Numbered from the stretch's first letter, positions 1 to 61,813 are shown. The stretch: DNA of 64,000 bases from Neoechinorhynchus agilis (GCA_051530055.1 CM121341.1:15726784-15790783); one strand, 5' to 3'. Numbers and translations: made by a program. Notes: generated from the letters alone by a model not told the origin.

Positions 1-598
1 CACCCATTCCAAGTGCTTCTTCGGCCAATTCTCTTGTAACAGCCGTGGAAACCTTTTCGCCAGAATCTACCATTCCTCCAGGAATGGCCCATTCGCCCGA
101 ATCCTTTCGTTTGATGGCTATAAACTCCAGGTCTCGATTTTCGGGATTAAAACGAGTTACAATTGCATCGGCGGCGTGATTGGGTCCCCACTTCCCAAGA
201 AGACCGCGACCACTTATGCCAGTTCGGCCCTCTGGATTTACAGGTCGATTTGTTTGAGGTTCGATTGTGTATTTGCCAATATGGCTCCTTCTGTCTACTT
301 TAGAAGTTCTCTTTTAGATCATCTTTTTTTACCACTACGCATATCAAGAGAACGCCTAATCCACGCTACCGTCGACGGTGTTAAACTGTAATGTGAGAGC
401 ATTTTCGGGATCAGCCCATGGGGGCAAACTTAGAACCGTCGAATGAGTGAATTCGAACGGTTTATAGTCTGCCCATTCTTCGGACCAGCAAACTTTGTCG
501 TCTGGAACTGGAAAACGCTCCACATTCTGTACTGAATTTGATCCATATGCAGAGTTTCTACACTTGGTGTGCATCAAAATATTTCTAAAAAATTTCAT
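1..598 (-). CDS. NUDT9: ADP-ribose pyrophosphatase NUDT9 (3' end runs off the window); interrupted at 301-368
   Basis: Translation gives [49 protein letters not shown] and the Nudix box [13 protein letters not shown]...RELAEEA. Confidence 0.93.
301..368 (-). other. TA-bounded hairpin intervening sequence in NUDT9 (66 nt removed)
   Basis: TA at 367-368 and 301-302; internal inverted repeat GTTCTCTT/AAGAGAAC; in-frame TAG inside; removal gives FNTVDGKVDRRSH. Confidence 0.6.
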
Positions 599-648
599 CG
601 CCGATACCAAACGGGACGGCGAGAATAAGGAACGCGGCATGCAGCATA

Positions 649-935
649 AAATACGTTCTAGAATCGATGTTCTCGTCAATAATGCAGTTAGGAAAATACG
701 AAAAAATCAATACTTTGAATATCAGAAAATTGTGAGTATTTACGCTTATTTATCGATATAAAAATTACAATAACATTTGTATGTAGAGAGAAAAGAGGAA
801 CGTGAACGAGGTTAGCAGCACAAAATATGTTCTAGAATCGATGTTCGCGTCAATATTGCATTTAGGAAAATACGAAACATGAAAATATTGTAAAGTATGA
901 GGAAGCGAATATTTCGACTTTTGGAAAATTGTAAA
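649..935. repeat. Degenerate direct repeat, ~173 bp period
   Basis: AAAATAYGTTCTAGAATCGATGTTC.CGTCAATA.TGCA.TTAGGAAAATACGAAA at ~649 and ~822. Confidence 0.8.
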
Positions 936-2825: not shown

Positions 2826-3499
2826 AGGTCTCTTACTGTTCTTATGCGGTTAACAAGCAAACTAATGAATGCTATTTCTCTTTTTATATACAGTTTTCTC
2901 AAACAGCAATTCTAGCTTTCGCCTGCACACAATAATATCTCGAGTGTTTTCCGTATGGCTCAAATAATATTGTGCTTTAGTACGATGGGAAAATTAGCAG
3001 TATTCGTTATCTTGCACAGCTAACGGAAACACTATGCATTACTTTAGGATTTCAAAGCAACAAAAAAGCGATTTGTGAAACTCATTTTAACTATACTCGG
3101 TCTCAAAAGTGATGAACGAACGGACATCTCAAACGAACGGACACATCCTCACCCGAACGAACCGTCCCCGACTGGGTAGTCCCATCCGAATAAACATCCC
3201 TCCGACCAGATATTACCTCCCGAACGGACATCCCTCGACTGCATATTCCCATATTAGCGGATGAGGACCCAAAGATACATGGGTCCTCCTAAACCTTAAT
3301 TCGAAAACAATTGGCGACACAATTAAATCTACATCGCCGCGCTCACCTTCATGGCTGGTAAAAAGGCCAGTAACCCAGCATCTACGAGGATCACCTGCTC
3401 GTGCCAAGGGTGCTCGATAACAACCCTCATCGCCCCCAACGCACATCCCAAAGCCTTGCCCGTTCTTTATCTGTGGGTTCTGCTTCGCCAAGCTGCTGA

Positions 3500-6400
3500 T
3501 CAAATTGGCACCAGACCGAATACCGTTTGGAATGCTTTTTGCAGTTGTTAACAGGGTACTTTCGACCGTGATAGACGCTAACCTTGAAACATCACTTTCT
3601 ACCATGCCTTTCGCCCAACAACGGCCCATCATCAGAATCATTCCACCACTCCGATCTCTTTCCTCCCGTTTCACCCGTCACAACACTTTCCACTCAACTG
3701 AGTGTATCCCAAAAACACAACCAAACTATTGCCAAGGATCCCTTACCAGCTCCCAGCACCCCCTTAATTTCACATCTAATTAATGACAAAGAGCGTGACC
3801 TGTTTCCGTAGGCCAACCAACTATCTTGTGACAACCCAAACATGCCATCCACACCTGGAAATGATAAATCGTCTCTGGACCCTCGACCTAACTCAATCCC
3901 GATTCTCAAACCTCCGGTTCTGACTCATATTACCTCCCTCACATCCACCCTCCGCGCAGCTCCTTCTTATCCCGCTCGTCGACTTCCGTCCTTTCAAGAC
4001 TACGCTCGCTTCTCAACAACGTCTACCTTCAGCCTCCCTCTCAGCAGATTTTACTGGAGATAACGCCTCCCTCACCAAAATCTTCTCGCGCACCACAAAA
4101 TCGTCCGCCTAACAAATCGAGGGTGTTTCCTAACACGGCCACCCTTCTCCCTGGCCACGCTAAACACAAACATAAGAAATATGATCCATCTCACGATCTC
4201 TTCATCTCCGGTATTCCTGAAGTTCCTGAATGTCCAATTTCTAGCCGTTTCAATGCGTTGAAACACAATCTGCTACATCTCAACGAAATTACCCGTACGC
4301 TCTTCCCTTATAACAACCTTCCGGCACCTGTATCTGTTGACTGCATCCCATCAAATAATCCAGCTGACTCTCGTCCACGCCTTCTAAAAGTTAGCTTTCA
4401 CCTTCGTGACATTGCCTCTGCCTACATCTCCAAACGCAATAAGTTATCGTCCGTTCAACACACACCTTCTCCTACCGTAAATTTTTGGATACCTCCAAAC
4501 GAACCCGCTGTTCCTTGGCAGAAATTAGACATACAACTGTTTTCTATCCCTTATCAGAAAATCGTCACACCTCAGACATACTAGTCACCACAGAAACCCC
4601 GCTTAGTGACTCAAACAAAGACACCACAGCCATAACTAACTTCACTATCTTTTACTCTGTCAGAGGCCCAACCCAAAAAATTTCGGTCGGCCTTGAACAA
4701 TCCACTTGCCCCCTAGGTGAACAGGCAACCACAACTTCACCCGACTTGACACCCATCTCGCCCCTCCAACCCATTTCCTTGCTGAGCATCCCACCTAAAC
4801 AGCCGTTCCCTACAATCATGTACACCAATATTCGTAGCATCCTACCAAAAATCGACGAGCTATCCATAGTCGCTACGGCCACCAAAGCCGACATTCTCGT
4901 CATTACAGAAACCTGGCTCTCCCAATTTAATAGGGACACTGCCATCATCCCCGGATTCTCCTCATTTCATCTCCCGATATGCACGCCCCATCGCTGTCGA
5001 TATGGGTCTTTGGTTGATGCTCTCGGGCGACACGGTCTCGTCTGCAGAAGGTCAGCAGGAAGATTCTCACGCCATTCTGAAATCAATAACGCAATTTCTC
5101 GGGCGTTGAGAACGGCGAACTTCCCGAACATCCTGGAACCCGCCCACCTCTGTAGACTAGACGGCCGTAGGCCCGATGGAATTTCGGTCTTCCCGTGGCG
5201 GGAGGGCAAATGCCTTCTCTGGAAAGCCACGTGTGTGGACAACCTCGCAGCCAGCAACATCCCCTACTCCCTCGAAATCGCCGGTGGTGCCGCCAGTGCA
5301 GCGGAAGGGAGGAAAATACGGAAATATCTTCACTTATCGAGGGCTCACTATTTTGTCCTCTTTGGGGTAGAGACGTATGGATCGCTCGGCCGCTCGGCAC
5401 TCTCTCTGCTCCAGGATCTCTCGAAGAAATTGAGAGAGGCAACCGGAGACTCAAGAGCAGGCGTATTCCTTCGACAAAATATCTCGCTAGCAGTACAACG
5501 GGGCAATGCTGCCAGCGTGATGGCGACGGTTGAGGAAGGACAAAAGCTGGAATTCGGCGGGAGGTGGTGAGTGTGTTAATTGTCGAGAAATAAAGATTGA
5601 TTACATTTATCGTTACTAGAGATGATCGTTCTGGAGAAGGCGACTCTATTTGCTTGAAGTCCTCCTTACCATACACCAACTCCACCCCTCACTATTTTAT
5701 ATCAGAACATCTCGAATGGGTTTACCTTCAACTCTCTCTTCGTAACGGCAGCCGTGAAATGACCGTCGCCGATGTTTATCCTCCCCCTGCCTCAACTCCC
5801 ACCGCAACATCTGAACAAATCGATACCTTAATTAATGACAAACTATCGTTAAATTCTCAACGCTTCATGATTTAGGAGACTTCAACCGTCTCCCTGCTCC
5901 ACCGTCACTCTCTGATCTCATACAACTAGTAAACTTCCCCTCGCGTGGTTCATCCAAACTAGATAAAATCTTTACCAATATAGCCAAATATTCCGCTCCC
6001 ATTAAACTCTCACCCGTAGCGACCTCGGATCACTGCAGCACCCTCCTCAGACCAATTGTTCCTCCGAAGCGACAGTCCTCCGACCCTTTCCCGGTCTGAG
6101 ATAAACGTGGCCATCACTCTCACATCTTCTTAAACAAGGTAAGTGATACCCTACCCGGAATCCGAAGTTCTATATTTAGCAACGACCCGTCTAAAGCCAT
6201 GGCGGCATTGCACAATACTTTAGTCCATTGCATGTGCATGTCTTTCCCTCGGAAAATGATTCGTATGTGGAATCGTGATCCACCATGGTTTTCACCTCTA
6301 TTAAAATCACTGCAAGACAATGTGAAAAATCCTTTCGCTCTCGACATCCCGACTACCCAGAATTCCACAAGAGATTCACTGAGCGCCTTCTTCACGCTCG

Positions 6401-7870
6401 CAAAACCTTTCTTTTTTCCAAACCACCGTCATCCCCTAATCGTTCCTGGTGGAGCGAGATCAAAAATGCCATAGGCCTTCACAGATCTCAGCCTTTCGCC
6501 AATCTGCATAAATGTCAGCTCGAAAGCTGCCATGTGCAATCCCAAATCTTCCACTGACACCAGCGTCGTACGCCCCTGCGACAATCGCAACCATATGACC
6601 TGGGTTACTTATTCACGCGTCTCCACTCTTGGGGTTTTCATACTCCTCAAAAAACTACCGCGTACATCATCCCCTAACGCTCCGATTTTCAACTGGGCCA
6701 TTCGCATCATCATTTCCTTGATCTTTGAGCATCTAGCTCATATCATCAATTCTGGCTTTGAAACGGGGATTTTTCCAGATTGCTTGAAGTCTGCTCGCGT
6801 CATTCCTATTCCTAAGGCGGGGAAACCTGTTTCTCTGACTTCCTTTCGCACTATATCTTTACTCTCACTGTTTTCTAAAATTTTTGAAAAATGTTTCAAA
6901 ACTCGCATCCTCCCCATCTTTTTACAAAACATTTTGTCTAACCAATTCGGCTTCCGACCAGGATTCTGTTGTACCGACGCCCTCTTGTGCATTTACGATT
7001 AGATTCTGCGCAATCTTGACTAGGAACCGTCTTTCGCTTGTCGCCTCATCCAGGTGGACTTTGCCAAGGTTTTTGACTCTGTAGATCACGATCTTCTCGT
7101 TAAGGCCTGCGAGAAATTTGGCTTCTTACCCTGGCAAATAAGCTGGCTCACTTCTTTCCTCGCAAACCGGTCGCAATATTTTCAATGCGGCAATACCTGC
7201 TTAACGAAGCTTCCCATACATTTCGGTGTGCCACAAGGAGCTGTACTATCGCCCTTACTTTTCGATATCTTCCTCAACGACCTTACACCCCTCTCAACGT
7301 CCGCTAAATATTTCCTTTATGCGGACGACCTAGTCATCATAACCCATGCTCCTCCATCACTCTTGCTCAGCCTCACGTCCGCAGAGATTGACAATCTTAA
7401 AAATTTTTGCACAACCCATCAACTCTCAATTAATTTCTCCAAATCATATGAACTTGTTCCGTCGCTTCGAAAACCTAGGACTGATATTCCACCGCTCCCT
7501 TTCGATATCCAACGCGTCACATCGCTTCGCATTCTGGGCCTAATCTTCCAACACAACCTCAAATGGGACATCCACATTAATGGCGTTGTAGCAAAAGCCA
7601 CTGCTAAATTGTATTTTATCAAGCGCTTGCGTTTCCTCGGAGTCAGCCCACGCGATTTAGCACATTTCTATTGGTCCGTCGTGGTCCCTGCAATCTCATA
7701 TGCATACCCAACCTTTTGCAATTTATCCACCCATCAACTGCGCTTGCTTTCCTCCCTAAATAAACGAGCCTGCAAAATTTGCTCCAAAAACCTCCCATTA
7801 ATCGAAGAACACCTTTCCAAATGCGACGACTTGCAGCTCATTACGAATTACAATCTCAATCAAACAACAC
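3500..7870 (+). mobile_element. CR1/L2-group LINE, decayed (ORF1 + APE + RT)
   Basis: ORF1 LFISGIPE...PRLLKVSF; APE YTNIRSI..K.DEL...ITETWL, GDFN, SDH; RT QFGFRPG, DFAKVFDSVDH, GVPQGAVLSPLLF, YADD; frameshifts and stops. Confidence 0.9.
4968..5608 (+). mobile_element. 5'-truncated CRE-type (RLE) non-LTR retrotransposon inserted in the LINE APE domain
   Basis: CRCxxxxDxxGRHGLVC, RHSEIN, RPDG...PW..GK.LLW, GVETYG, QRGNA; flanked by CATTT (4963-4967, 5604-5608); removal restores PGFSSFIVTRDDR. Confidence 0.88.
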
Positions 7871-7996
7871 GAATGCAAAGATATCAGGAGTTATAATCAA
7901 TTTGATCACAGATTACTTCTCCTTGTCTCAGGAGGAATGAGTGGATCGAACTCATCACATTGTGCACTTCTAAGAATGCCTTTTAATTTAATTCCA

Positions 7997-8225
7997 AATG
8001 GCGAATTGTAACACACTCGAGTTTTATTGACGATAACCTTGCGAATTTTCAAGGCCTTAACTTCCTTCTCAAGCATTGTTTGCAAGTTTTTTTATAAAAA
8101 ATGCTTGAAAAGGAGGCTGAGGCCTTGAAAATTCGCAAGATTGATCTCAATAAAACTCGAGTGTGTTACAATTCGCCATTGAGAATGCACATCCACCCGA
8201 AGGAACAATTGGATTGAATTTTAAT
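7997..8225. mobile_element. Inverted pLTR fold-back family F2 (variant hammerhead core) with ~45 nt one-sided tail
   Basis: AATGGCGAATTGTAACACACTCGAG... inverted 7997-8180; CTTGARAAGG..CCTTGAAAATT..AATAAA; tail identical in the inverted copy at 51936. Confidence 0.65.
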
Positions 8226-8560
8226 TTAATGGTGAAATCTATGATCAAATTGGCGGAGTGGCGATGGGGTCCCTCTTAAGACCCGCATTATTTGATTTCT
8301 ACATGTCTAGTGGAAGAATTAAGTGTACAGTGGGATTCATGGGCTAATAAAATGGTGGCGATATATCGACGACGTTTCCTGCGTGCTAAAATCTGATCCT
8401 AAATTCCTTCCACTCACGCATTTATTCAATAATAAAGACAGGGCCATTCAACGGTCCATCTCGTACGAAGACCAAAACAAAGTGACAACGTTCTTCGATG
8501 TTTGTGTGAAGGGAACAGGTCGTGGCGTAAACACTTTCATATACCGGAAACCTGATATCT
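8222..8560 (+). mobile_element. Penelope-like element RT fragment
   Basis: FNGEIYDQIGGVAMGS, WWRYIDD, FFDVCV, FIYRKP motifs. Confidence 0.8.
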
Positions 8561-8739
8561 GTTGGTAAAGCACATTGTGGAAAAACAACTCGCTTCAAGC
8601 TTTCGAAATAAAGGCAGCGCAGTCTTCATTCCGGAGAGCTACTCCATTACTATAACTCCCTTAGATTATCATCAACGACAACCAAAGCAGCCTCTATCTC
8701 ACTCATTTGCATCCCCTAGGTACCCAAATCCAAACTTCC

Positions 8740-13683: not shown

Positions 13684-14126
<443 letters not shown>

Positions 14127-16933: not shown

Positions 16934-17876
16934 CTAACTTCTAGAGCGATTTACTATATCGATAAGTTCACTAAGATCTCGGACATCATTCTCCGATCGT
17001 TTTTCGTTAAAGTGCGTGATCAGTCGATCGGGTCGACAGAGCCAGATAAGACGAAGACACATTGGGCCAAAGAACCGAGTTGAATGCAGTAGATCGTACG
17101 CACCAATGTCGTCTACTCCATTGATCACGCCGAGAATGCGTGACCTATGGTCAAGATATGTGAGAATACACACGGTCGCATACCTATAAAGAATGAGATG
17201 ACGCACAAAATTGATTTGGCATCAAAGAATCTACCCGTACGAATTCCGGATCGTATGGTTCGTATTGGTGACAAGCTGCTTCCAAAATGAACTCGTGTTT
17301 ATTGGCGTTCAATGCATCTTCCAAGAATGGATCGTGGAACATTTCTGGGGGCTGAATCGATCGGTATGGTCGATCAAAGAACAGTTGAATCCATCGCTGG
17401 CGTTGTTCACTAGACGCATGTTCCAAATTTCCGTTCGGTTGCCGGACGACCACAACTCTGTCCTGTAGTAAATTTAAAAAAGGATTGTGTTTAAGCGCTT
17501 TAATTTATAGCGCTAACCCGATCATCAACGTCACTGATATCCACAAATCCATAAGGAATGTCAGAATGGTTCTCCAGTTCGGGATCGGTTTCGATAATTC
17601 CACTAGGACATTTAATTGGATCGAGAACTGGCGGCATTTGAAGAACGGTCTTCCTCACAGTTTCCATGGAAGTTTGAATTGCCTGCTCATTTAAAAAGTA
17701 AGCTAAATATAAAGATCTTTGCGTACCTTTTGATATTGGTCTTGTGTTAGTAAACAGACTTTAGATTTATCAAGACCAGGGCATCGCTGAAACACCCGTT
17801 TAATGTCAAATCCTGTAATTCTGTAGAGGAGCCGCTGTACCGTTGGCATTATGAAAACCTTCTCTATACTTGTCAT
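16934..17876 (-). CDS. MRPS22: Mitochondrial ribosomal protein S22 (3' end unresolved)
   Basis: LQMPPVL, DRVVVVRQPNGNLEHAS..QR.RWIQLFF, CHQYEP.DP.F, YDLLHSTRFFG; three GT-AG introns plus one TA-bounded insert. Confidence 0.85.
17114..17158 (-). other. TA-bounded hairpin intervening sequence in MRPS22 (43 nt removed)
   Basis: Stem CCATAGGTCACGC/GCGTGATCAATGG; removal fixes a stop and frameshift, giving RVYSHIDDIGAYDLL. Confidence 0.8.
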
Positions 17877-17935: not shown

Positions 17936-20349
17936 TTATTCCTTTTTCTCATGTTCAGCATTTATTTGCCCTTGTGCCTCAACGTCCTCGATTCGGCGAT
18001 CTCCAACAAGTCCAAACTCATTAACCCGCGTGAAGTCAACTTTATAGATCCACATTTGGTAAAGATAAATAAAAAAGACAATATCGTCCCTGAAGCAACT
18101 AATCCGGTAAAGGATTGGTGTTTTGACAACAAAAGCAAAGATATCATCGACAAAAGTATTCAGTGCTTTATAGGTCATCATTCTCCATGGTAAATGAGCC
18201 ACGGATTTTAGTTTGTAGTTTATGAACAGTTGTGGGGTCATCATGATGAACCCGAACGTTAAAAGAAATCCGTAGATCATTGATAGAAGCCAACTGTACC
18301 ATCCTCGGTGTTCGTTGTATATCAAAGAGTAGATGGCATAGCTGCACACTAAAGGGAATAGTACCACTGACAGGTATTTGAACGCCGTCTGAAATTGAAG
18401 AGTGGAAAATTGGAGATTATAAGTAGACAAAGGAGTCTAACCTTGTCGTATTCACTTGTGGACGAATCAACGTAAGACGATGTGAAACTCACTTTAACGG
18501 AATACGGAAACAACCCCTGTCTTCGATCAACCTAAAAGAAAAAACCTCAATATGCAGAAACGACAATGCTGTAAAAATTAAAGTAGTTCTATTGAATCCG
18601 ATTGTTTTCGGACGCACAGTATTGTGCGCATTCTTTACCCAAATGTTGTTTGTAAGTTAACAATCGGATTCAATGAAACTACTTTAATTTTTAATCTCCA
18701 AACATAAACAGTGGCACACCTTCTTTTTACGCATGGGATTACGGAAGAAGCTAATTTTTGTCAAATTTAACGTTTACCTTCACGTTCAAGCACTTTGGCA
18801 CTTTCCAAATTTCCAAAAGGAATCCAAGAAACGCACTGATTCTAATCCCGAAATTGCTTTGATTATCGAAAACGTACAGCATCACAATAAGACTCGAGAA
18901 TATATTGAAGAGCATAGATCGTACGGAGAGTCCTTGAAGGTCGGTTTTGTTTCGCCAGAATTGGATATCATTTTTGAATGCAAGGAATTCGAAGAAGGTA
19001 TGTGCTATGGACACAATTACAGTGAGGACCAAAATGTAGATATTAGTTTCAAGAAGACTTTGCTTAATGAGATCTTGTCCGTCTAAGTCGACATCTTCAC
19101 CACCGGCGGATAATACTGAAGACCACATGGGTTTCACTTCCTGACTTAAGTAAAGTTGAAGTTTCCATAGGCGTAATGGAGCGAAGATGAGGTTCAGATC
19201 GACTTCCTTTACGGTTTCGTTAAGCTCAAAATACTCGGAGTTCAGGTTCCAGTAATCGTTTAGGTCATGCGCAGATAATCTATGGTCTCTAAACAAAGAA
19301 GTTGATTCGGAATTTAAGGGACTATTTACCAGCAGAGCACGTTTATCTACGAACCCAACCTTTAAGAAGGTATAAAACTAAAAATTGTTTGTTTTCTGCG
19401 CTTAAAAATAGTCTGCTGATTTTGTCAAATAAAAACGGATGCTTTTGCATGTTCTGTTGATTTTGTTAAACTAACAAGCAGGAAATTAGAAAGTGACTAC
19501 TGTCGGTTTGTGTCGTTTACAGAATCTTCTAATATCTACCTTGTCCCACATAAGTCCGCGGCGATTCTAGACTTGGGTGGAAGGCACCAGGAACTAATTA
19601 ATCTTTCTCGAATCTACAAAAACGTCCATTGAAATTATCCACACATGACATAGATAAACCATGGGAAAATAGGTTGTTTTCGACGCTAGTTTAACGTATC
19701 TATCGAATGGAGGAGCTAGTTTTGAAGCGGACCATTGTGTTTGATCGTCAATTATGTTGATGGTCATGTTTGGATGAAAAAACGAGAGTATCTCAACAAC
19801 TTGTAGTTCGGCTTTACGTTGGTATTCTTGATCATGATCGGTTTGTCCAGTTAAAAGGTTCTTTGTTTGATGATAGGACCTGCGTCGATATTTGTTTAGC
19901 TGTTTCGTCTGACAGAAGGCACTTTGTCGATCAAACGGGTTTCCGGATTCAGTGAAACAAGCGTGAACGTAAAAAGATCCATTGTTTTGAACATGTTCAC
20001 TGAGTTTGACTTTTCCGGATTTCTTAAAAGAGCCGTCTTTCCCCTGTGAATAATCAGCGTACCTGATTTGCCTTTGTATCCAAAAAGGCTCGATCCCCGG
20101 CGCTAGTGTTTCTTCGTCACTTACAAATACAAACATATCGAATACTGTGCGTCGAGGAACGTATAAATTCTGAAGAAGATTGCTTCCCGCGTCGGACGGT
20201 TGAACAATTCGGTCCGGTTGGGGCCTGAACATCCTCATCACAAGATACGTTATGGCCAACTGAATGGCAATACGACGTATCTTGTCGAAAAGAGAATCTC
20301 TGGACTCGGCTCGTTGCGGCGCGCCATTCGTCGTGGGTGGCTCACTCAT
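17936..20349 (-). CDS. CLPTM1: Cleft lip and palate transmembrane protein 1 (lipid scramblase family)
   Basis: HPNMTINIIDD, NDYWNL, FEFLAFKNDIQFW, FIMMTPQLFINYKLKSVAHLPWR, YQMWIYKVD. Confidence 0.95.
19261..19652 (-). other. TA-bounded intervening sequence with 16-bp terminal stem in CLPTM1 (390 nt removed)
   Basis: TA-T-GTCATGTGTGGATAAT ... ATTATCTGCGCATGAC-C-TA; removal gives YFPMVYLNDYWNL. Confidence 0.85.
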
Positions 20350-38873: not shown

Positions 38874-40749
38874 TCACCTCAAAGTTTTCATGTCGACGAC
38901 ATAGGTGTTCGTATCTGATCCGTCGATCAAGCCGCTCATTGCGTCTTTAATCTGCTTATGAGAAATGGTTTTGAACGGAAATCTGATGAAGTGCTTGTTT
39001 AAGTACTCAAATACTCTACTTGTAAGTGCGGATGAAGATACGCTCGGTACCATAAGGGTTCGCTGTCCTTTGTTTAGATTCCATAGATCAATATTGATTT
39101 CCGCTTTACTTCTGCTAGTTATGATCTTCGCGTATGTGCCGTTCAATTTTAGCAACTCAAAATATTTAGATGGTACATGTTCATTCGTAGGACATGGATC
39201 GATCACTATATCGAACGAATTAGGAGTAAGGTCGTCCAATTTTACAAATTTTATTTTCGCATTATCCTCAGATACTATCTCCGAAAGTAGCATCTTTTTC
39301 GTCTTAAAAATGGCGACCGTTTAAAGAAACGATCGCTCAAACGGCCGCCAAAGGTATTTGAGATTATAAATATTGAAATCGGCAGCTTGCTTAAAAATAC
39401 GGCTAATACACGCACGAGTTCAAATGGATCGGCACCAATCAGTGCAATTTTCTGGTTTTGTTTACTAGATAAACATCTGTCGATTATATTTAGTGCTATT
39501 GCTCCGTTATGAAGTACCGTACTTGCCGCATCTGGTTCAATATTATCCGGAATTATGGTCACGAATGCTTGATTTACGACCATGTGGGTGCTGAACCCAC
39601 CACAAGTTACGGCCCCGTCGTCTTTCTTAAAAAGATAATTGTAACATTGAACCGACCCTTCCTCACAATGACCGTTGAATCCCTGCCGGCAGTTTTCACA
39701 TTGTCCACATGAGTCCACTAGGGGACCGAGGGCAAGTTTTCTCTGTGGTTTAGATCGATAAATTTGGGAAGGGATTTTTGTTTAATCGAATAAGGGCAAT
39801 TTTTAATTGTTTTTATATGGCGGAAAAATTAATAGAATTTATTGATTCCGATATTTCAGCACAATATTGTGCCTTTATCAAGGTTTCTTGCACATTTTGA
39901 AATATGTGAGCTACAAACAACCTTGATAAATGCACAAGATTGTGCCGAAATATCGGAATCAATAAATTCTTTTAAATTTTCCGCCATATAATAACATGAA
40001 TAGTTCAATCTTCAAACAATTTTTAATTATTTTTTGTGATAAAGTATAGATGGAAAATGGGGCTTAGTGATTGTTTTTGGAGCCGCTTAGAACTACAAAG
40101 GTATAATCGATTTTTTCCTTTAATGGAATTAATGCACTTTTTGACTGTTTTTTATGGTTGAGAGCATTTAAAGGAGAAGCGCTTGGACCGAGTTTAGTTT
40201 TCTAAACCATTTAGATCGAAAAGTAATGGAATGGGACTAACGCGTTTTCTGAACTATTTTTAGTCCCGAAAAACTTTTAGGTGAACCATGACCGAGTACC
40301 AGTTTTATCAGTCCTTTCAGCGGTTTAGATATAGTGGAAGTGATGCATTTTTAGATTCCGAGGATTTGAACGAACCCAATTGAAGATTCCACGTGGAGAA
40401 ATCTTGCTTTATGGCAACATAATCCCCTTGTTGAAGTTCAGTGACCGTTTCACCGACCTGATACACAACCCCAGTTACCTGGTGACCTGGCACTACAGGT
40501 AATTTCATTTCTGACGAGGTACAGTCAACAAACACTTGCTGATCACATTGGCAAATGCAGCAGTATAGAACTTCTACAAGCACATCATCTTTAAGTAGGG
40601 GTCTTCGACGAATGTTGAATTGTTCAATTCGACCATTACGAGACTTTATCCCGCAAGCTTTGACTGTCATACCAGTAGAAGGCCTTATTAGGTACAAATA
40701 AGTGTTAGAAAGAAGGTTGATGCACTTACCCTGCGATCGGTTCGTACAT
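38874..40749 (-). CDS. Zn-dependent medium-chain alcohol dehydrogenase, CAD/YahK-like, with degenerate active site
   Basis: DVLVEVLYC, PVVPGHQVTGVV.QVG, VDSCGQCENCRQG..GHC, T.GGFS..MVV; one GT-AG intron and two non-canonical inserts. Confidence 0.85.
39305..39356 (-). other. TA-bounded hairpin intervening sequence CAD-2 (50 nt removed)
   Basis: TA-CCTT-TGGCGGCCGTTT..AAACGGTCGCCA-TTTT-TA; removal fixes the frameshift, giving IFIISNKTKKMLL. Confidence 0.8.
39728..40411 (-). other. TA...TC-bounded intervening sequence CAD-1 (682 nt removed)
   Basis: TA-AA-GCAAGATTTCTC..GTGG / CCAC..GAGAAAACTTGC-CC-TC; removal gives GDYVAIGPLVDSC. Confidence 0.75.
39814..40019. mobile_element. Inverted pLTR fold-back family F4, nested in the CAD-1 insert
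   Basis: ~70-bp arms; CTTGATAAA-(G)GCACAA..TTGTGCC-GAAA-TATC..AATAAA; tail shared with solo arms. Confidence 0.7.
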
Positions 40750-47986: not shown

Positions 47987-48610
47987 CTATTTTCCAACGC
48001 TCACGACGAATCTCGCACAACCGAGAGTCCTGTTTGTTTGTTTGTAAGTGTGATCTTCCTTTTCTTGAACCAAATAGGCCTCGACTTTAAAATCTCCATA
48101 GAGAACAGGAGCCATAGCAATGGATATTTCTTTGAAGAACGTAGGGACGTTATAGTCGCCGATTGGGATTGGACAATGACAAGGGACGTGTGCCTCTTCG
48201 AATCCTGTTGGACACGGCGCCGGTGCTAGTCTGCATATGTCTTTATAGGTACATGATCCGTATTGATTTTCAATGCATGGTATGTAAGGTCCATTTAGCA
48301 ACGATAAAAAAGAAACTATCATTGCCCTCCGAAATTGCTGAATGTTCCATTAGATCGGTAACGCTCCCACTAGTCGATATACCGTTGTCTCTATATTCAT
48401 CTTTCCATTAAGTTCCCGGCTCACATGTACAGTGCCGTTCAAATACACTCCGCCGGGCACTGGAACCGGTATAGGCGATAACTGGACGTTTTCAAAGTGA
48501 ACGGCGGCGTTTTCGTCACCACAATCCGAAATATCAAACGTAGGTTCAGCGAGTACAATCGAAGTGAATATACTGAACGATACAGCAATAAGCTCCAAAT
48601 AAATCATCAC
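47987..48610 (-). CDS. GM2A: GM2 ganglioside activator / ML-domain lipid-binding protein
   Basis: Signal peptide, SDCG, LSPIPVPVPG, IPC....GSCTY.DIC, PCHCPI..GDY, YGDFKV, LGCA. Confidence 0.85.
48285..48352 (-). other. TA-bounded hairpin intervening sequence in GM2A (66 nt removed)
   Basis: CATTCAGCAAT/GTTGCTAAATG stem; in-frame TAA at the boundary; removal gives VGALPIYIPC. Confidence 0.8.
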
Positions 48611-49495: not shown

Positions 49496-51328
49496 GAATC
49501 TTATAAGGATAGTGGCCAATATAAAGGGAATCAGGATGAATTGAGCAAAATAATTGGGAGGGCGGCCATATTTTCGTACGACCGATTGGACGCCAATACT
49601 GTTCTGGATCTTCTTATTTCCAACGAAATCGACGACTCAGTCACTTTGGTTATAGGGCAACAATCTCCACAATTTCTGCAGGAACTTACTGGTGGGAGAA
49701 TTGATAGGACAATCAAAACCGAAGAATCAGTTCCTTTCATTTTGGATTTCACCAATGAACTCAAATTAATTCGATGGATTTATCTGGCTGACGAACAAAA
49801 GGTTTGTTTAGTGTTCAAATATTCGCTTACGCTGTTCGATCCGTGAACTATAAAGCAAATTTCACTTCTCAAATACCGAGATGTGGTTAGTGAAATAGAA
49901 ATTAAAAATGAGACTTGCGACGTCCTTGGAATTATCGGGAACGGTTTTAGTGCCTACGTTTACTCAATTATGGGACGTTCAAGTGGACGTGTATGTATAC
50001 GCTTAAAGAAAGATCGAATAATCTTTTAAATCCAGTTCTATGCGTTAAAAGTAGGAACGGCTTTCACTGCGAAGAGAGAAATACAAAATGAGGTTTCGAT
50101 TTATAAAAAATTAAATGGAAAGATATATCCGAATTTGTAGTAAGTAGTTCTAGGTTTTGGAAATTGTGCATGATCATCTGCTCGTGAATAGCTGGAATGG
50201 CGATGTAGCATCGTATCCTTCGCTTGTAACCGATTTACTCGGCGGCAGTTGTCAACAACTGTTTGAACTCAACAAGTATCGATTTCCTTCAATGCAATCA
50301 GTGATTGGTTTGGCAATACAGGTTATTGCATACTTTTGTTCGCTTTTCCCCTGGGTATAAATGTAGATGTTGCACTGCATTTGGGATTTCCACAAGTTAG
50401 GATTTATCCATTGTAGCATTAAACCAAGCAACTTTGTATTCGGTCTCGAACAACAATCTAGTAAGGTTAGAAAACAATGACAATGACGAGTTTATTTCAT
50501 GGATTTTTCCGAACATCAAGCTTTATTTGATCGATTTCGGAAAATCTATAATGATCGCGATTCATTGCACTTTCTTTAAATGAGCCACGATCTTTTACCT
50601 GCGCAACTGAAACCTCGCAAGATTAATGCAAAAATGACAAGCTTTGCTTCCTTGAATTGTCTGCATGGATTTATTGACAGGTCAGAAAATTTGAATATAT
50701 TCAGTCGACTGATTTTATGTAAGCCTAGAAAATTAAAAATTTATGTGAAATGTTTAGAACAATTTTTTATACCGCCACCGAATTTTTGTAGAAATTAAAC
50801 GTCCTCCTACACTTTGGAATTTAAAAAATAGCGAGGAAATAATCTTGGTTTCTATGTAGGCAATCTCGATAATTATAAATTATTATATAGGTTTACATGA
50901 ACATTACTATGTTGACTGCGTTGAAATCTTCATGCAAAATATGCTTTTTGGATTCTTCATACAAATTTAATATTAAAATTTTTATAACACTTTTCAGTCG
51001 CCGCGACGATGTCGAGTCGCTTCTGTACAGTCTTCTATATTTTTTAAATGGAGGATATTTCCCCTGGTCACCGTATTCCTCGGATATGGGTGAGCCTGAT
51101 GAGCAACTTCTACTTCAGACGAAAACCAACGAGATTATTTTCTCCTTATGTACGGTAAGTAACTTTAAATATACGAACTCGCAGTCAACTTACGACTAGC
51201 ATTTTCCGAAATGTTTAATCGACTGCATCACGTACTGTCAAAACCTGAAGTTTGAGCAGGAACCTGATTACGGGCTCATTGAAGAAATGTTGAAGGAATG
51301 TTTGAATAATAAATCACGAGATCATTAA
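49496..51328 (+). CDS. CK1/TTBK/VRK-family kinase-like protein (HRD to HCS), with unknown N-terminal extension (further exons upstream to ~48782 likely)
   Basis: IIGNG, YALKV, LVTDLLGGS, IHCSIKPSN, LYLIDFG, SRRDD.ESL.Y, FEQEPDY; seven GT-AG introns plus one TA-bounded insert. Confidence 0.82.
50549..50597 (+). other. TA-bounded hairpin intervening sequence in the kinase (47 nt removed)
   Basis: GATCGCGATTCATT/AATGAGCCACGATC stem; removal fixes a stop and frameshift after DFG. Confidence 0.72.
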
Positions 51329-53389: not shown

Positions 53390-53715
53390 GAGGTCGATCT
53401 TTTGAGCATTGTCGGTTTTCGTCTTTGTTCTTCTCCTTTCCCAACGTCTTGAGATCTCCGCTCACACTGTCCTTCCACCTCTTTTTGGGCCTTCCCCTTC
53501 TCCCGTCGTTGATCCGGTAATCCTGAATAATTTTTCACAAACCCAGGGCGCCGGGTTCGCGCGTCGCATGAAGGGAACGCCCCAGCCTGATCGATCGGAG
53601 GTATTATACTTGACATTGCTGATGTGTCTTTGGCTCAAGGTTTTACGGCCGGATGCCCTTCCTGACGCCAACCCTCTCCATTTGTCCGAGCTTGGGACCG
53701 GCACCGACTCGTCCC
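53390..53715 (-). mobile_element. Bipartite non-autonomous RTE derivative (5' UTR joined to RT 3' end)
   Basis: RTE-type 5' motif GTCCCAAGC.CGGA.AAA..GAGGGTT.GCGTCAGGAAGGGCATCCGGC.GTAAAA followed by RRGRPKKRWKDSV.GDL coding remnant. Confidence 0.75.
53637..53713 (-). ncRNA. Putative HDV-like self-cleaving ribozyme (RTE 5' UTR type)
   Basis: P1 GACG/CGTC, P3 CCG/CGG with loop GTCCCAAGC, GG for P1.1, J4/2 CGTAA, P2 GGT/ACC. Confidence 0.55.
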
Positions 53716-53719
53716 GATG

Positions 53720-54780
53720 AAACGTGTGCTCTAGAATACGTAAACTAAGAGGCGTGTCGACGTTATCCGCTCTTGTATCCTTGGATAGATTGAGGGACAA
53801 ATTTATACGTGGTAAAATTGCGTTGAGGTAGTCGATGCATTGCCTGATTAGACATTTGAGTTTGGCAGCTATGTGGGCAGGAGCCCATGACCAATACTTC
53901 TTGAATTCAGAGCATCCTTTGTAGAAAACGGAATGTTTACCGTTGCAGTTAGCGCAGCGCTTGATTGATTTGTTCAGGCAGCTCTGGGATGAATGTTCTG
54001 TTTCCGCGTGAGAACGACATTTTGGAGTAGGCGAGTTAGGGCATTGTTGAGTCGCAATGTGGAAAAATATAGTCATCTTGATGACATCCCGATTTTTGTG
54101 TGAAACGTATTTCGAAACAATTGAATGCACAGTACGTCCTCTCACATAGATCATTTCTTACTTGTCTGGAACCTTCCACCATGGCTATTGAAATCGGGCT
54201 GCCTGTTTTGCGTGAATTGAGAAAAACTTAATCGAGCTAAATTCGGTTAAAGTCCGTTTGCTAAGAATTGCACTTTTTGAGTGACAGATTTGACCGAATA
54301 TACTTCACTCGGAAGATTGGCGCTACCGAATTCCTATAGACTGGATAACCAATCATGGTTAATCAAGTAAACTCTTGAGATTTCTCTATAGTAGGTAAAA
54401 TGATCGATTCGTTTGACACGGTCGTTTTTGAATAAGCGCGCCCATGGAGCAACGTTATGATTGTAAATCACGTCTTTAGGCATTAACGGGCTCGATTTAA
54501 TAGTGAGGATGTGAGGCAATCTTTTGATTGGATAAACCAAGTATCCATGCTGAGATCCGATTGAAGATGTCGACTATTGAGTAATTCTTTGTTTTTTATA
54601 ACCCTCCAAGAGGAGCTGAGAGCTTGGGGTTTTTCTTGAGTCAGAGAGCAGTTGCTCTCAGAGCTCTGGGGATAAAGAAACCCTAAGAGCATTGGGTGAC
54701 CGTACGCCATCCTCCACCGCAACATCTTGTTGCGCACACAAAAAACTGATATATTCGAAGAAGGCAGGCGAATAATTTGT
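53720..54780 (-). mobile_element. I/Jockey-group LINE ORF1 (gag-like) remnant
   Basis: CANCNGKHSVFYKGCSEFKKY zinc knuckle; related to 55821-56465. Confidence 0.7.
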
Positions 54781-54879
54781 ATGAGACAGTCATTGTCGTG
54801 TTAGTCACCTACCTACACGTCCAACCATTTTAACATTTTTGATGCGGACCAGGAGAGGTGCTGACCGAAGGGGTAGGGA

Positions 54880-56990
54880 AGCTTATGTAGAGCGATGAGA
54901 AATGTCGCTTAGTGACGAATGATAATAATTGCATAGTAAAAAGAATTTAGTTTTTTTTGCATTAAAAATACGGATATTAAGAGCTGAAAGTTTAAATCTC
55001 TTGTTTAGAAGAACATTGCTTTCGAAATCCCAAAAAATCAAATCATGCCCGCAAGTTCGGAAAAGAGCGAATTGGGAAGTAACTGTCGGTTTAATCGTAC
55101 ACGACTTATTCCAGCAGCAAAAGTCCAAGTAGGAAGAGGTAGAATTGGCGGTGAAAGTAGAGTGAGGTCGCAAAATAATTGAATGCGATGCGGTAGCTCG
55201 GGTGATGGCTTTGGTCCATTTATGCGAAGGGTCGTTGAAATCTCCGAAAAGCATATCTACCCCAGATTCCAGGATATTTCTTAAGATAAAGTTGTTATGT
55301 GCCAGGTATATTTTCCTTGGGCGTACGTAGACGTTACCGATTAAAAATTTCCTACCGTCAACGAAAATAGAAAAAATAATATATGAGAGGTCAGTTGTTG
55401 CGTGTTCGGAAATTCGTACGGGATGAAGGGAGTGCCTGATCATCTATAGAAGTCCTTGCGAGTGGTTAGGAAGAGGCATTGTGATGAAAAACGAGAATTC
55501 TCCTGCTATATCCTTGAAATTGCTGGGAAGGTGTCCAGCGTTTGATATAGACTTCGTCTCTTGGATTAAGATAATGTCGCTCCTCGCCAGTTCATGGTAT
55601 AGTCTGGGAAGGCCTATTCGCCCGCCTGAATTCCACTGCACCAATCTCATGCCTTTTGCTTACCTTTCCTGATGTTGATTGTTCGGCTATTATGGCTCTG
55701 ACGTACTCTTCGTTGTCGTCAATCTCGATATCGGTTGCCGAGGAATTGAAGTCCGAAGTTGTCCGAAGTGGCCTCCGCACTCGCTTTTGAGGCACATGTG
55801 AACCGGTGGCCATGGTCTTGTCAAATTGATGTCATTAACGAATCAAAATGTTTAATAAGCCGCTGCTCAAGATGCTGCATGGCGGTGTTAATTCTCAGAT
55901 CCACTATCTTCAATATCCTGGCACCGAATTGCTCGAGTTTGTTATCCAGATCATTGGGGGAAATTTCCGTAACGTCTTCAAACGACAACAACCCCACCGG
56001 TGCTTCTTTCCTAGGCAACGAAGGTACTTTTGAATGACTCGATGATGTGTGATTGTTCCACGCAGTCCCCTGATTGACAATATCCATTTCCTTCCGTTGA
56101 GCCCATAACACGTACTTTTTGAATTCGGAGCAGGATTTAGCAAAAGCACGGTGGCCCGTTTGACCGCAGTTGGCGCATCCACGAATTGTTTTGGGACAGT
56201 TTTCATTGCAATGTTCCTCTGCACAGAAGGGGCAAATATTTCGCTTCATAGGGCATTTCTGCGCCCAGTGACCCAATTTCTGGCAGCGATTGCACCTTGG
56301 ATAGTGATAATCATCATAGTTAGAAATGTCATTGGCGATGAACTTAATTTCCGTAGCTTGGAAGAAGCACCGTCTTGATGTTAGTTGATCCCTAACGTCC
56401 ACTGCCGCTTTAGCGACAGAACGCGGGATAAGTGCTCCTGATTTTCTTGATTTTAGTAAGAACAAAATCCTACATCCATATTTTCGCTCGAAATCCTTTC
56501 GATCTTCGGAATCAATGTGGTGATAGACCCGACACTAGGAAGGTGGATTCGTAAGTGCCCACGGTGACAGATATTCCACTTTTATCGCAGTGTTTGTCAA
56601 CGAAATCCGCGAACTGTTTTACGTAGTTGTTACCGACGAAATGAATTTTGATTTTGCCGGCGAAATATGAGATGGACTTTATTCGTTCTCGGTCGTCTTT
56701 AATCGTTCTGAGCCAAGGAGTTATGAGTCTTTGATGCATTATTTCTCTGGACAAGATTGGGTTTGATATTAGAATGACCGTGTGAGGCCATCTTTTTGTG
56801 GGTCGATCTATATATTTGGGGTTGTCTTGATCGTTTGAGAGAGTTTTCGTTCCCTCAGTCGAAGATAAGTCATGAGTATTGGGTGGCCATATGTCACCCT
56901 CCTCCGCAACAACAGGTTGCGAAAACATTGATGGTTGTTGCGTACACATGTCAACGCTGAAAATCGACCTCTGATATAATTTTTGATATT
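54880..56990 (-). mobile_element. I/Jockey-group LINE: ORF1 with three zinc knuckles plus APE, truncated
   Basis: RCNRCQKLGHWAQKC, CPFCAEEH, CANCGQTGH; APE LVQWN, ILIQET, GNVYV, GDFN, YLDF. Confidence 0.85.
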
Positions 56991-58876: not shown

Positions 58877-59521
58877 CGTTTGGTTACGACTAAAACTCGC
58901 AATTAGCTCAAAACATGAAAATTGGCATGTTACTCATAATATCCATGAGTTGTTATAATGAACAATAAAACAAATACTGCAACTGAGTCCCACGAGCATG
59001 CTTAATGGCCGTGACGAATACATAAAAGCGTTGAATCGTTTTTCAAAGTTTTATGAACATTGAAATTTTACTTGCATTTTAACCGGGGTTCCGTGATCGA
59101 TGAAATTTCGATAAAATCGAAAAATGTTGAATATTTTTGCCTTTTTCAAAAATTTGCAAGTGTGATTTTTGAAGTGTCGATATCCAAGTTAGGAATGGTT
59201 GAAACGTTAGATCCTGAAAATGCCATTAAAAACCAAGCTTGAATATTCGCTGGCGATGATCTACTCCTGGAGACATTAAAGTGTGATTTACCACTATGAA
59301 ATTTCCATTTCAAAACGTATTTCCTAAATTTTGATTTTTGGTTTAAAACAATTCATCGCCGCCGTTCACCAAATATAGAATTGCGCGTTTCAAGACTTCT
59401 ATAATGGATTCTGAACGTTATTGATTTATGACTGTTTGGGTTCGAGAAACACCCTTGTCCAAAAATCAATCACATAGAAGACAGTGTATTCTTCAAGCAC
59501 TCGCATCCTAAACTCAAGATC

Positions 59522-61813
59522 TTAATCCGGCTTTTCCCTTTCGACTTTTGGTTCACATTCCACATCGCATCTCATTCTCTTAGACATTTTACGATATCCG
59601 CTAACTTTTGATTTGGTTAAATGAACATGATCCGAATAATCCGAATCGGAATCCGCTACACTGTCTTCTTGTGGTAACTGATCGTTCGATTCCGAGAGAA
59701 AATGCGATATATCGGCACAAGGACTCACTGAACCGGTCTTTCCAAGTTGTGTTGCGTACTCATGGAATAAAGGAGGCAGAATTGAGTGCAATCGCTCGAT
59801 CTGTTCATCACTTGCATTCCCTTCCCGGAAAGCGTTTCCATGTCCCATTTTGGACATCAATTCAGATTCTCCAAATATTTCGGCTTTGTTGGTCGAGTAG
59901 AAAGTATAGTGGAAGATAGTATTGTTTGCAATGTAGTTGACTTGGGATCCACTAGGAAAAAATATACAAGTGACGGGGAGAGTCGTTCCGTCAACTTCGG
60001 TCACTTCTGTGTATTTAGAAGCGTTATTTTCACGAAGTTCACTCCTTGATGCCACCGAAATCAATATGTTTTTTATAAAGTTCCGTTTAGTTTCGATCAT
60101 GGCGTTTATGACAGAAGGACGGCGAAGAAGAGCCACGAGGTGGGTAAGAGGCGATTCGAAGGATTTCCGAGTAATATCCTGAACGTTGCTCCAAACGCAC
60201 TACTTTTTCGAGTAGCGCTCGTTTAAACTTGGCGAATCTTTTTCTCGCCATATATACATTGAAAAAGAATTATAAAAAAGAAAACTTTGTAGATATTGGC
60301 TATATGTTTTTTATCTTTCCTCGCAATAAACACTAATACTTTAGAATTGAACAATTTATTTACTTAAGATGAAAGAGTGTTTCCATGTACTTCGATCCGC
60401 ATTCAAAATATCTTGGAACCTACCAATATTTGCGAATCGGACAACATTCCCTAGGCCCGAGGAAAATGCCTTTCATGGAACGCGAGCTACGAGGAAAGGT
60501 CCAGGATCAATGGCGACAGCACCGGAGCAGAAGAAATTTCTGAAATACCGAGAGCTGCAGTTTTCAACTTTGCCCCCTTTGAACCGGAGACTAACGATGC
60601 TGGAGAGCGTAATGGGATTATCGCAAAGGGCCTCTTGTGGCAGCTTTCTTCAGCCACCTATATTAAAAATCAGGCGAGCTAATGCCACCGACGTAAGGGA
60701 ATGACAGCGGCGTTGATTTGATTTTTTATTCAATAAAATTTTCACATCGACGCAAAAAACTGGTGATTCTTCTTCCTGCACTTATTCCGACTCGATCTGG
60801 AAAATGAACATGTCAACTTAAAACATATAGGATAATTATCTTCGACGGGAAAAAGAGACCTTTTTTTGGTTTTGTCGGACAATTCCGATATTTCGCAAGT
60901 TTGTTGCTTCAGGACGAAATATCGGTTCTTAAATTAGTGACTTGAATCCCCGAAGTGACAAAACTAAGAAAGTTAACGAAATATTTGTTGTGATTATAAA
61001 ACAATCTACATGGAGGCAAATGGATTTCTACGGCAATTAACCACCCATTTGGCGTTCCGTCTGTCTTAGTTTTTCTAACTGAGACGAAATTTTCTTGCAC
61101 TCTTCGGCGGCATTGGAAGGATACCCATTCCACCGGATAACTTTGTGCTCCTTAGCGATCATTTGCATCGCTAACAACACATTGATGGCATCGTAAACTC
61201 GACGCCGGATGTTTTTATGGTCATAAAAGAGTTCATCAGCAGAGAGATTCGGTTGATTCCGCCTGGATCCATGATAACAAGCGGAAGCATGAGAAGCCGT
61301 GACAGCAGCAGCCGCGGCGATTTCCGCGCAATACTCTTGGACGATCTCGTCAGCTACTTCATTGTAGGTCGTAACGACTTTCTCTTTTACTTTTTGGCAA
61401 ACCTTCATGCTGAAATGACGAAGACCGCGGGTTTTATCTCGGTTTTGAGTCTGACTACCTTGTGTGCTGTATTGGTTGTAGACCGCAGAAGCCTGAAGAC
61501 CGGCTAACCGAGAATATGCACTCGAAGTTGGTTTAATTTGATTGGATGAAACGAGTCCGGATTCGCGGACTTCCAAGCCCGTCTGTTGCTCCTCGGCAAG
61601 CAATCTTCTACTACGAAATCGGGCATTTCCAGGAGGTTGTCCTAGACTTGCAGTACTGATTCGGTCACCCGATGGCGTACAAATATGCACAATCTTAGGT
61701 TTTATCGGATTCGGACGAGGACGTAAAGTAGGTAACACAATCCTGGGAACGTCCGGACTGTCGAAATTTGTTGAATGCCGGTTCGAAGGATTTCGACTGC
61801 TCCGCATGTTCAA
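59522..61813 (-). CDS. TFDP1: Transcription factor DP (E2F dimerisation partner), split by a 960-nt non-canonical insert
   Basis: GLRHFSMKVCQKVKEK..TTYNEVADE, KNIRRRVYDAINVLLAM, then the DP C-terminal domain (LP...; E....MG.G...REG....I.....ILP) in 59522-60106. Confidence 0.9.
60107..61068 (-). other. TA-bounded intervening sequence in TFDP (960 nt removed)
   Basis: TA-A-GACAG-ACGG ... CCGT-CCTT-CTGTC-A-TA; removal gives ECKKISSQLEKLNAMIETK. Confidence 0.8.
60380..60700 (+). mobile_element. Decayed CRE-type RLE fragment nested in the TFDP insert
   Basis: NILEPTNIC..., RGKCLSW, EQKKFLKYREL, NFAPFEPET. Confidence 0.6.

Follow-up and report, generated by a model that had tools for sequence, protein, structure and literature searches.

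Self-pairing, mostly TA-bounded inserts without GT-AG ends in conserved genes of Neoechinorhynchus agilis

Inserts that derive from DNA transposons and leave a gene functional are known from several quarters. The internal eliminated sequences (IESs) of Paramecium and Blepharisma are thought to descend from Tc1/mariner elements, and non-autonomous elements of the Tc1/mariner type are recognised by a TA duplication combined with terminal inverted repeats. In animals, SOS splicing cuts exonic DNA transposons from mRNA, as observed in C. elegans and in human cells (Zhao et al. 2025, PMC12779559). Inverted repeats of any sequence trigger it by pairing; it does not depend on GU-AG ends, and it uses the RTCB ligase; the junctions lie near the repeat termini, and the pathway is conserved from worm to human (PMC12779559). 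SOS splicing also lacks precision, and C. elegans purges exonic insertions, few of which are fixed (PMC12779559). Here we describe inserts with related properties in a window of 64,000 nucleotides, the whole stretch analysed, from the acanthocephalan (Syndermata) Neoechinorhynchus agilis (GCA_051530055.1 CM121341.1:15726784-15790783). Six inserts, lacking usable GT-AG ends and having ends that can pair, interrupt the reading frames of NUDT9, CLPTM1, a CAD-like Zn-ADH, GM2A and TFDP.

The genome of N. agilis comprises 46.2 Mb, with gene models predicted by BRAKER (PMC12690905). It was assembled from hybrid Oxford Nanopore Technologies (ONT)/Illumina data, using DNA of pooled whole males and females (PMC12690905). 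The genome paper is silent on introns and splice sites (PMC12690905), and our literature searches found no report of non-canonical introns in acanthocephalans. A scan of the 64-kb window with Rfam gave zero matches.

Six inserts in five conserved genes

A sequence-only reading of the window had proposed a second class of intervening sequence next to the ordinary introns, without GT-AG ends, with paired ends, and in need of exact removal. This was borne out for six of the eight segments proposed, located in five genes (two of them in the CAD-like ADH), while the segment in MRPS22 failed and the one in a CK1-like kinase is weak. All GT/GC-AG pairs and all TA..TA pairs restoring an open frame were enumerated at each candidate site. 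The latter are plentiful, with 30 options at GM2A and 41 at the shorter CAD element (30-41 per site). Because AT-rich DNA makes TA..TA pairs cheap, homology is needed to fix the junctions, and the choice among removals was therefore based on homologue spacing in solved structures, orthologues and Pfam profiles.

The removal of 66 nt from NUDT9, 390 nt from CLPTM1, 682 and 50 nt from the CAD-like ADH (CAD-682 and CAD-50), 66 nt from GM2A and 960 nt from TFDP leads to ungapped or continuous homologue alignments. A GT/GC-AG pair at the junction that homology requires is absent for all six elements, and present in a 55-nt intron of MRPS22 and in 11 other introns. As had been expected, the nearest GT-AG alternatives add or delete residues (+31 in CLPTM1, -2/-3 in NUDT9, +23 in TFDP, +2 at CAD-682 and +11 in GM2A). 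In the four genes with a junction inside a Pfam domain, exact removal outscores the best GT-AG path by 7.6 to 32 bits; the comparison for CAD covers both CAD sites together, and the NUDT9 junction lies outside its Pfam domain. Apart from the inserts, the reading frames are intact over 184-574 codons. As far as reading frames and homologues can tell, exact removal is needed for these proteins to be made.

The CLPTM1 element (19263..19652, minus strand, 390 nt) contains an in-frame stop and is bounded by TA on both sides. Its ends read TA-TGTCATGTGTGGATAAT...ATTATCTGCGCATGAC-C-TA and form a terminal stem of 18 bp, including four G.U pairs, with a terminal duplex of -23.5 kcal/mol (P=0.0007). After removal, the join TTT TAT C^TA AAC GAT (here and below, a caret marks the junction) encodes YFPMVYLNDYWNLNSEY, that is MVYL^NDYW within YFPMVYL^NDYWNL. 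The counterparts in Pomphorhynchus (YFPILYLNNYWNL), Brachionus (YYPIIFLNDYWNL) and Adineta (YYPVLYLNDYWNL) align without gaps. The predicted transcript join is CCCATGGTTTATC^TAAACGATTACTGG, also written CATGGTTTATC^TAAACGATTACTGG. The NCBI model, P0001, passes through the element with two GT-AG introns and a mini-exon, thereby losing VYL and gaining 34 residues (+31 in total). The Pfam CLPTM1 profile matches the excised product in one piece with 400.6 bits, versus 368.7 bits in two pieces for P0001. The conserved VYL is encoded by the nine nucleotides just before the element, which are intronic in the NCBI model; if the exon is kept through VYL, inspection by eye found no open GT-AG path from there.

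In Pomphorhynchus laevis, the codon that carries the element lies inside an exon of CLPTM1 (10001-20530 of its locus L001), with no intron. The window model shares 95% identity over the full length with the N. agilis protein ACOME3_003735 (GCA_051530055.1), the next match being P. laevis with 54%. N. agilis CLPTM1 (17936-20349) has two GT-AG introns versus thirteen in P. laevis, likewise all GT-AG, and these counts point to a massive intron loss in N. agilis. GT-AG intron 1 of CLPTM1 also harbours a TA-flanked MITE (a miniature transposable element of the inverted-repeat type) at 18572-18693, whose terminal inverted repeats measure about 34 nt (TAAAAATTAAAGTAGTT...).

Two elements interrupt the CAD-like Zn-ADH (38874-40670, minus strand), for which the database holds no annotated N. 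agilis protein. The first (40409-39728, or 40411-39730 with TA...TC flanks; minus strand, 682 nt) causes a frameshift. Its terminal stem GCAAGATTTCTC/GAGAAAACTTGC, a 12-bp terminal repeat, has a duplex energy of -19.3 kcal/mol (P=0.002). The join GDYVAI^GPLVDSCGQC (GDYVAI^GPLVDSCGQCENC) is gapless against five homologues (GDRVGVGCMVDSCGEC, GDRVGVGCMVDSCGECENC), and the predicted transcript join is GATTATGTTGCCAT(A/C)GGTCCCCTAGTG. A MITE with 83-nt arms, 90% complementary, is nested in this element (39798..40028), and partial copies of it lie at 43308-43454, 43985-44055, 15026-15087, 24664-24842 and 52652-52697. The second element (39307..39356, minus strand, 50 nt, TA/TA) also causes a frameshift. 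It is a near-perfect 17-bp hairpin (TTTGGCGGCCGTTT...AAACGGTCGCCA) with a minimum free energy of -24.3 kcal/mol (z=-3.8; none of 200 shuffles was as stable). The join IISN^KTKK is gapless against the five homologues and aligns with SQTLNKK, with ATAATCTCAAA^TAAGACGAAAAAG as the predicted transcript join, and every GT-AG path at this site loses at least 16 residues. The ADH_N domain scores 73.1 bits after excision versus 63.2 bits with GT-AG alternatives at both sites. The nearest relatives found are ADHs of Bacillales (about 29% identity), which are bacterial and intronless. Furthermore, GHE is replaced by GHQ, and the NAD-binding GxGxxG is degenerate (IGADPFE). Judged from its sequence, this gene may reflect a horizontal acquisition, a loss of enzyme function, or fast evolution.

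The NUDT9 element (361-296, minus strand, 66 nt; the registers 358-293 to 361-296 are equivalent) contains five in-frame stops. Its flanks show a GA/GA microhomology and not TA/TA; a 13-bp stem, TTAGGCGTTCTCTT/AAGAGAACTTCTAA, is TA-flanked and internal to the removed stretch. The terminal duplex reaches -14.6 kcal/mol (P=0.044). The product DGSVD^RRSH is gapless against human NUDT9 (1Q33; DGHVERKS, FNEKDGHVERKSKNGLY), the GT-AG options remove GSV, and the predicted join is GGTAGCGTGGA(T/C)AGAAGGAGCC. The GM2A element (48287..48352, minus strand), likewise of 66 nt, is bounded by TA/TA and opens with an in-frame TAA. Its removal yields GALPIYIPCIENQYGSC (GALPI^YIPC), gapless against mouse GM2A (AGFWVKIPCVEQLGSC), with the predicted join GCGTTACCGATC^TACATACCATGC. 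After excision the ML domain reaches 33.3 bits, whereas the best GT-AG alternative reaches 25.7 bits. The ends pair weakly (P=0.09), and the main fold is a strong internal hairpin (z=-2.3 for the whole element).

The longest element interrupts TFDP (60109..61068, minus strand, 960 nt) with an in-frame stop, and is bounded by TA/TA. The terminal stem is interrupted (GACAGA.GGA/TCC.TCTGTC; terminal duplex P=0.027). Against DP1 (2AZE), the excised product aligns continuously over the junction with 27.1 bits, versus a partial alignment of 22.1 bits with 23 additional residues for the best GT-AG alternative. With the Pfam DP profile, the excised product lies above the cut-off (27.9 bits) and the alternative below it (19.6 bits). 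The predicted join is CAGTTAGAAAAAC^TAAACGCCATGATC. On the opposite strand, at 60351-60701 (plus), the element carries an open reading frame (ORF) similar to the '...AAE.K..KYREL...' of repeated retroelement-like ORFs, found at 5161-5567, 10899-11180, 23205-23813 and 46065-46745; it is a nested fragment of a transposable element (TE).

The remaining two segments behaved differently. For MRPS22, a TA..TA segment of 43 nt had been proposed, and no such solution exists. The break is a GT-AG intron of 55 nt (17463..17517, minus strand, GTTAGC...CTACAG), whose terminal duplex of -4.6 kcal/mol sets it outside the element class. Its product, DDR^DRVVVVRQPNG, agrees with the R.R..VVR that is invariant among nine orthologues. 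Homologue spacing, claimed earlier to match the TA-junction products, does fit exact removal at CLPTM1, GM2A, TFDP, NUDT9 (with GA/GA flanks) and the first CAD element (with TA/TC), but not the segment proposed in MRPS22. A second break in MRPS22 (17141..17240, minus strand) needs the loss of 94 nt; the GT..AG pairs there take 90 or 96 nt, and neither a GT-AG solution, a terminal stem nor TA/TA was found. The annotation cuts MRPS22 into fragments of 110 and 89 residues and leaves the middle exon out. In the CK1-like kinase, the removal of a TA/TA candidate of 47 nt (50549..50595, plus strand) restores the frame where no GT-AG solution does. Its terminal duplex is weak (P=0.088), the resulting activation loop is nine residues shorter than in CK1, and the frame is equally mended by removing 20 nt or by a 1-nt indel (one extra A). 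The remaining introns of this gene are canonical. The kinase (49802-51325, plus strand) has HCSIKPSN where the catalytic HRDIKPDN is expected, and is, on this motif, probably a pseudokinase.

Some observations concern the neighbourhood of these genes. CLPTM1, MRPS22 and a TMED/p24 gene form a head-to-tail row (15828-20349, minus strand) with gaps of only about 60-80 nt, and the TMED ATG (16519) immediately follows ...ttcgttttag. This packing looks like an operon or a trans-splicing arrangement. For MFSD1 (44150-45982, plus strand) two junctions were determined, both canonical, one at 44982-45032 (GTAAGT...ACAG) by a junction scan and one near 44850 by eye.

Paired ends, TA repeats and the origin of the inserts

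The properties of the class were evaluated on seven candidates, the six good elements and the weak kinase case. Their terminal duplex energies range from -12.3 to -24.4 kcal/mol, compared with -7.4 +/- 3.6 kcal/mol for random segments of the same length, and with -2.5 to -10.8 kcal/mol for 12 GT-AG introns of the same genes. Elements and introns do not overlap in this measure (Mann-Whitney P=2e-4; Fisher combined P=3e-8), and four of the seven elements stand out individually (P<=0.003 or z=-3.8). The proposed self-pairing of the ends is thus a property of the class as a whole, without being significant alone for the terminal stems of GM2A, NUDT9 and the kinase. The stems measure 11-18 bp. Homology places the junctions 0-9 nt away from the base of the stem, and none has GT..AG ends. 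A gapless search for inverted repeats in the DNA misses the terminal stems of CLPTM1 and TFDP, because these consist of short blocks with G.U pairs or mismatches.

The TA boundaries proposed for the segments, one of which was said to end with TC, are present in most of them. TA/TA repeats flank five of the seven candidates (four of the six strong ones), the exceptions being NUDT9 with GA/GA and CAD-682 with TA/TC. The chance of TA/TA is 0.5% per site without slack and 5% with a slack of +/-6 nt, so that five of seven correspond to a P below 1e-5. If each element is taken to start with TA, N^UA is read at 12 of the 14 cut sites. Beyond the TA, the element ends differ (TAGGCG, TATGTC, TAAAGC, TACCTT, TAATGG, TAATGA, TAAGAC), and by eye we saw no bulge-helix-bulge of the tRNA type, no IRE1-type loops, no U12 consensus and no TTAA (piggyBac) at the borders. 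Two further statements of the sequence-only reading are borne out. The segments share no sequence, neither among themselves nor with the rest of the 64-kb window, where only the MITE nested in CAD-682 has other copies; and they coexist with ordinary introns in the same genes, as the 12 GT-AG introns used for comparison illustrate.

Most likely, the elements are old, now unique MITE-like insertions with a TA target. Small TA-target DNA transposons, with terminal inverted repeats and a duplicated TA, would have landed in coding exons of N. agilis and become fixed. An insertion, rather than an inherited intron, is indicated because the CLPTM1 element is absent in Pomphorhynchus and because two elements lie in an ADH with bacterial closest relatives. 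That the insertions are old is suggested by their decayed repeats, by the TEs nested in them and by the lack of copies, and since the elements have no other copies in the window they do not represent a young family. TA-flanked MITEs do occur in the window, one of them nested in an element. Elsewhere, the window contains many fragments of non-LTR (long terminal repeat) retrotransposons and related TEs (3200-12000, 23200-30400, 34400-35700, 46000-47100 and 53300-56600) and, at 13650-14170, an (AAT)n microsatellite some 500 nt long.

Possible routes of removal

How the inserts are removed, and by which machinery, we infer from their structure and from described pathways. We consider it probable that removal takes place at the RNA level, counting an SOS-like route and a permissive spliceosome together. 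RNA is favoured because animals have a described pathway, SOS splicing, with just these properties. The gene would be transcribed together with the insert, and in the pre-mRNA the insert ends would pair, bringing both junctions together at the base of the stem. Cuts in the RNA would then fall within a few nucleotides of the stem, at either junction mostly at N^UA, and the exons would be rejoined; the loss of the insert plus one TA would restore the original frame. The likeliest of the candidate machineries is a hairpin-triggered pathway of the SOS type (AKAP17A/CAAP1/RTCB), selected toward one precise junction per element. We propose this spliceosome-independent route tentatively, as a reading that may well prove wrong. 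The sequence-only reading was aware of no animal whose genes undergo TA-IES-like excision; for removal from RNA, SOS splicing supplies a precedent in animals, and the MITE-derived introns of Fritillaria borealis are a second. Circumstantial support comes from the BUSCO scores, in which the transcriptome exceeds the genome (eukaryota 71.0% versus 58.4%, metazoa 54.9% versus 47.1%; PMC12690905), a gap that is expected if transcripts are intact where genomic frames are interrupted.

Several results weigh against this proposal. Within the conserved motifs where the sites lie, removal has to be precise, whereas SOS splicing is described as imprecise, and the stems of 11-18 bp are short beside the 54-nt repeats of Tc1. 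Two good elements, NUDT9 and CAD-682, lack the TA/TA repeat, and the terminal stems of NUDT9, GM2A and the kinase do not reach significance singly. An exact look-up of the predicted mature TFDP, GM2A, CLPTM1 and CAD proteins in a protein collection returned none. Finally, a strand test based on G.U pairs and stem stability favoured the sense strand for three elements and the antisense strand for four, and with this split the test is uninformative on RNA versus DNA.

The other RNA-level route, which we regard as rather doubtful, would have the major spliceosome accept non-GT-AG ends joined by a terminal hairpin, as proposed for Fritillaria borealis. The architecture is the same, with terminal inverted repeats and a target-site duplication at the borders (PMC11282704); furthermore, the elements share genes with normal GT-AG introns, hybrid SOS/spliceosome events are known (PMC12779559), and the second break in MRPS22 looks as if a GT donor had been joined to an end other than AG. 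However, TA is all that the ends have in common, without the AG-AC/AG-AT ends or the preceding TAC of Fritillaria, the 3' ends show neither a polypyrimidine tract nor AG, and the elements are a minority among GT-AG introns that look wholly ordinary. Excision may instead act on the DNA, with inserts present in the germline and cut precisely at TA in somatic nuclei, as for IESs. The TA/TA repeats in five of seven cases and the loss of the insert plus one TA are exactly the outcome of IES excision, the elements range from 47 to 960 nt without a common sequence, their stems show no sense-strand bias, and pooled whole worms, in which germline tissue abounds, were the source of the DNA (PMC12690905). 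Yet NUDT9 and CAD-682, both well supported, do not have TA/TA, no end consensus like TAYAGYNR is seen, and IESs are not characterised by long terminal stems. We know of no precise intragenic DNA excision in animal soma besides V(D)J recombination, and of none reported in acanthocephalans; a literature search for such excision in animals or acanthocephalans found nothing. Were it true, the assembly would represent germline DNA and the soma would use a rearranged genome, a first for any animal; we judge both this excision and that consequence to be improbable.

The remaining explanations dispense with a special excision. Ordinary splicing could use nearby GT-AG sites or mini-exons and leave indels in the proteins, and frame-keeping GT-AG paths do exist at CLPTM1 (P0001), NUDT9, TFDP, CAD-682 and GM2A, BRAKER having taken such a path for CLPTM1. 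We find this unlikely, as homology scores fall on all such paths except at NUDT9, where the junction lies outside the Pfam domain, and conserved motifs are broken (VYL in CLPTM1, whose codons before the element the NCBI model puts into an intron; GSV in NUDT9). At CAD-50 no GT-AG path deletes fewer than 16 residues, and the terminal stems, TA repeats and exact-length fit would go unexplained. It is very improbable that these genes are dead or artefactual copies, that is recent or polymorphic insertions or assembly errors with working copies elsewhere. Such an origin would agree with a hybrid assembly of pooled worms, with the degenerate cofactor motifs of the CAD-like gene, and with the kinase and the second MRPS22 break, which may each be 1-nt errors. 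However, the otherwise intact frames speak against it, unique inserts of 50-960 nt with in-frame stops are not indel errors, and the absence of other copies in the window does not fit a young family. The protein collections hold no second copies either, with one CLPTM1 protein and only two MRPS22 fragments for N. agilis, and rare null alleles would not occur six times in five conserved genes within 64 kb. It is hardly credible that the short inserts (47-66 nt) undergo translational bypass, in which ribosomes hop a hairpin, as they do in phage T4 gene 60 and at the yeast mitochondrial 'byps'. In NUDT9, a TAG stop and a hairpin come directly after the would-be take-off codon GAT, with a matching Asp codon (GAC) 66 nt downstream, and in GM2A a stop immediately follows the exon end. 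However, GM2A has no matching landing codon where homology demands one, inserts of 390-960 nt are too long to hop, those of CAD-50 and the kinase require a change of frame, and a single mechanism for all elements is more economical.

Significance and comparison with known systems

Inserts of this general kind, transposon-derived, bounded by inverted repeats, without GT-AG ends and removed to restore genes, are already known. What is new here are TA-flanked, fixed and unique inserts in conserved coding motifs, in a new phylum, and in about one gene in three of the window (five of about fourteen). If they are removed as predicted, a small (46 Mb), intron-poor animal genome needs a structure-defined, non-GT-AG excision for its housekeeping genes. 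Should the SOS route hold, they would be natural, fixed and precise substrates for a pathway discovered in 2025, whose endogenous targets and evolutionary role are unknown (PMC12779559). Otherwise, Fritillaria would be joined by a second animal in which non-canonical introns arose independently from transposons. Either way, it would become testable whether DNA transposons turn into intron-like elements without gaining splice signals. The gene models at these loci are wrong or missing, with 31 additional residues in CLPTM1, a split MRPS22 and an unannotated ADH. Missing BUSCO orthologues were read by the genome authors as gene loss (PMC12690905), and part of this acanthocephalan 'gene loss' may be an annotation artefact of interrupted frames.

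Among the described systems, the substrates of SOS splicing come close, being inserts in animal exons with pairable inverted repeats of any sequence and non-GU-AG junctions near the repeat termini. Their natural representatives are Tc1/mariner-type elements with a TA target, which matches the TA flanks found here. In contrast, the SOS substrates described are recent or engineered insertions that are purged and imprecisely removed, whereas the N. agilis inserts are fixed, unique, short-stemmed, and located in conserved motifs where an exact junction is needed. The introns of Fritillaria borealis (Henriet et al. 2019, via PMC11282704) are similarly species-specific and non-GT-AG, with terminal inverted repeats and target-site duplications, beside conserved GT-AG introns. 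According to the same account, however, most have AG-AC/AG-AT ends and a preceding exonic TAC, none of which occurs at the borders here, and they are the majority in their genome (PMC11282704). In N. agilis, TA is the sole border feature shared, the elements are a minority, and no repeat family is recognisable within the window.

The nonconventional introns of euglenids also have variable borders and no polypyrimidine tract, with a stem that joins the ends and duplication-like repeats at the junctions. They span tens to thousands of nucleotides and coexist with conventional introns. Yet these are introns of protists, and their CAG/CTG signature (+4..+6, -8..-6) is absent in all seven candidates. 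IESs of Paramecium and Blepharisma resemble the elements in being intragenic, TA-bounded, unique and of many sizes, and in leaving one TA behind. Unlike the route proposed here, their removal acts on DNA and relies on a domesticated piggyBac transposase, and their hosts keep germline and somatic nuclei apart. Moreover, the TA that is obligatory there is lacking in two of the six good cases here, and IESs have a weak end consensus (TAYAGYNR) that the elements do not share, and no long stems. With Stowaway-like MITEs, which are Tc1/mariner-derived, small and without coding capacity, the elements have in common the TA duplication and the terminal inverted repeats. Such MITEs are multi-copy and share their termini, whereas the elements of N. 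agilis are unique within the window and have to be removed for the genes to function.

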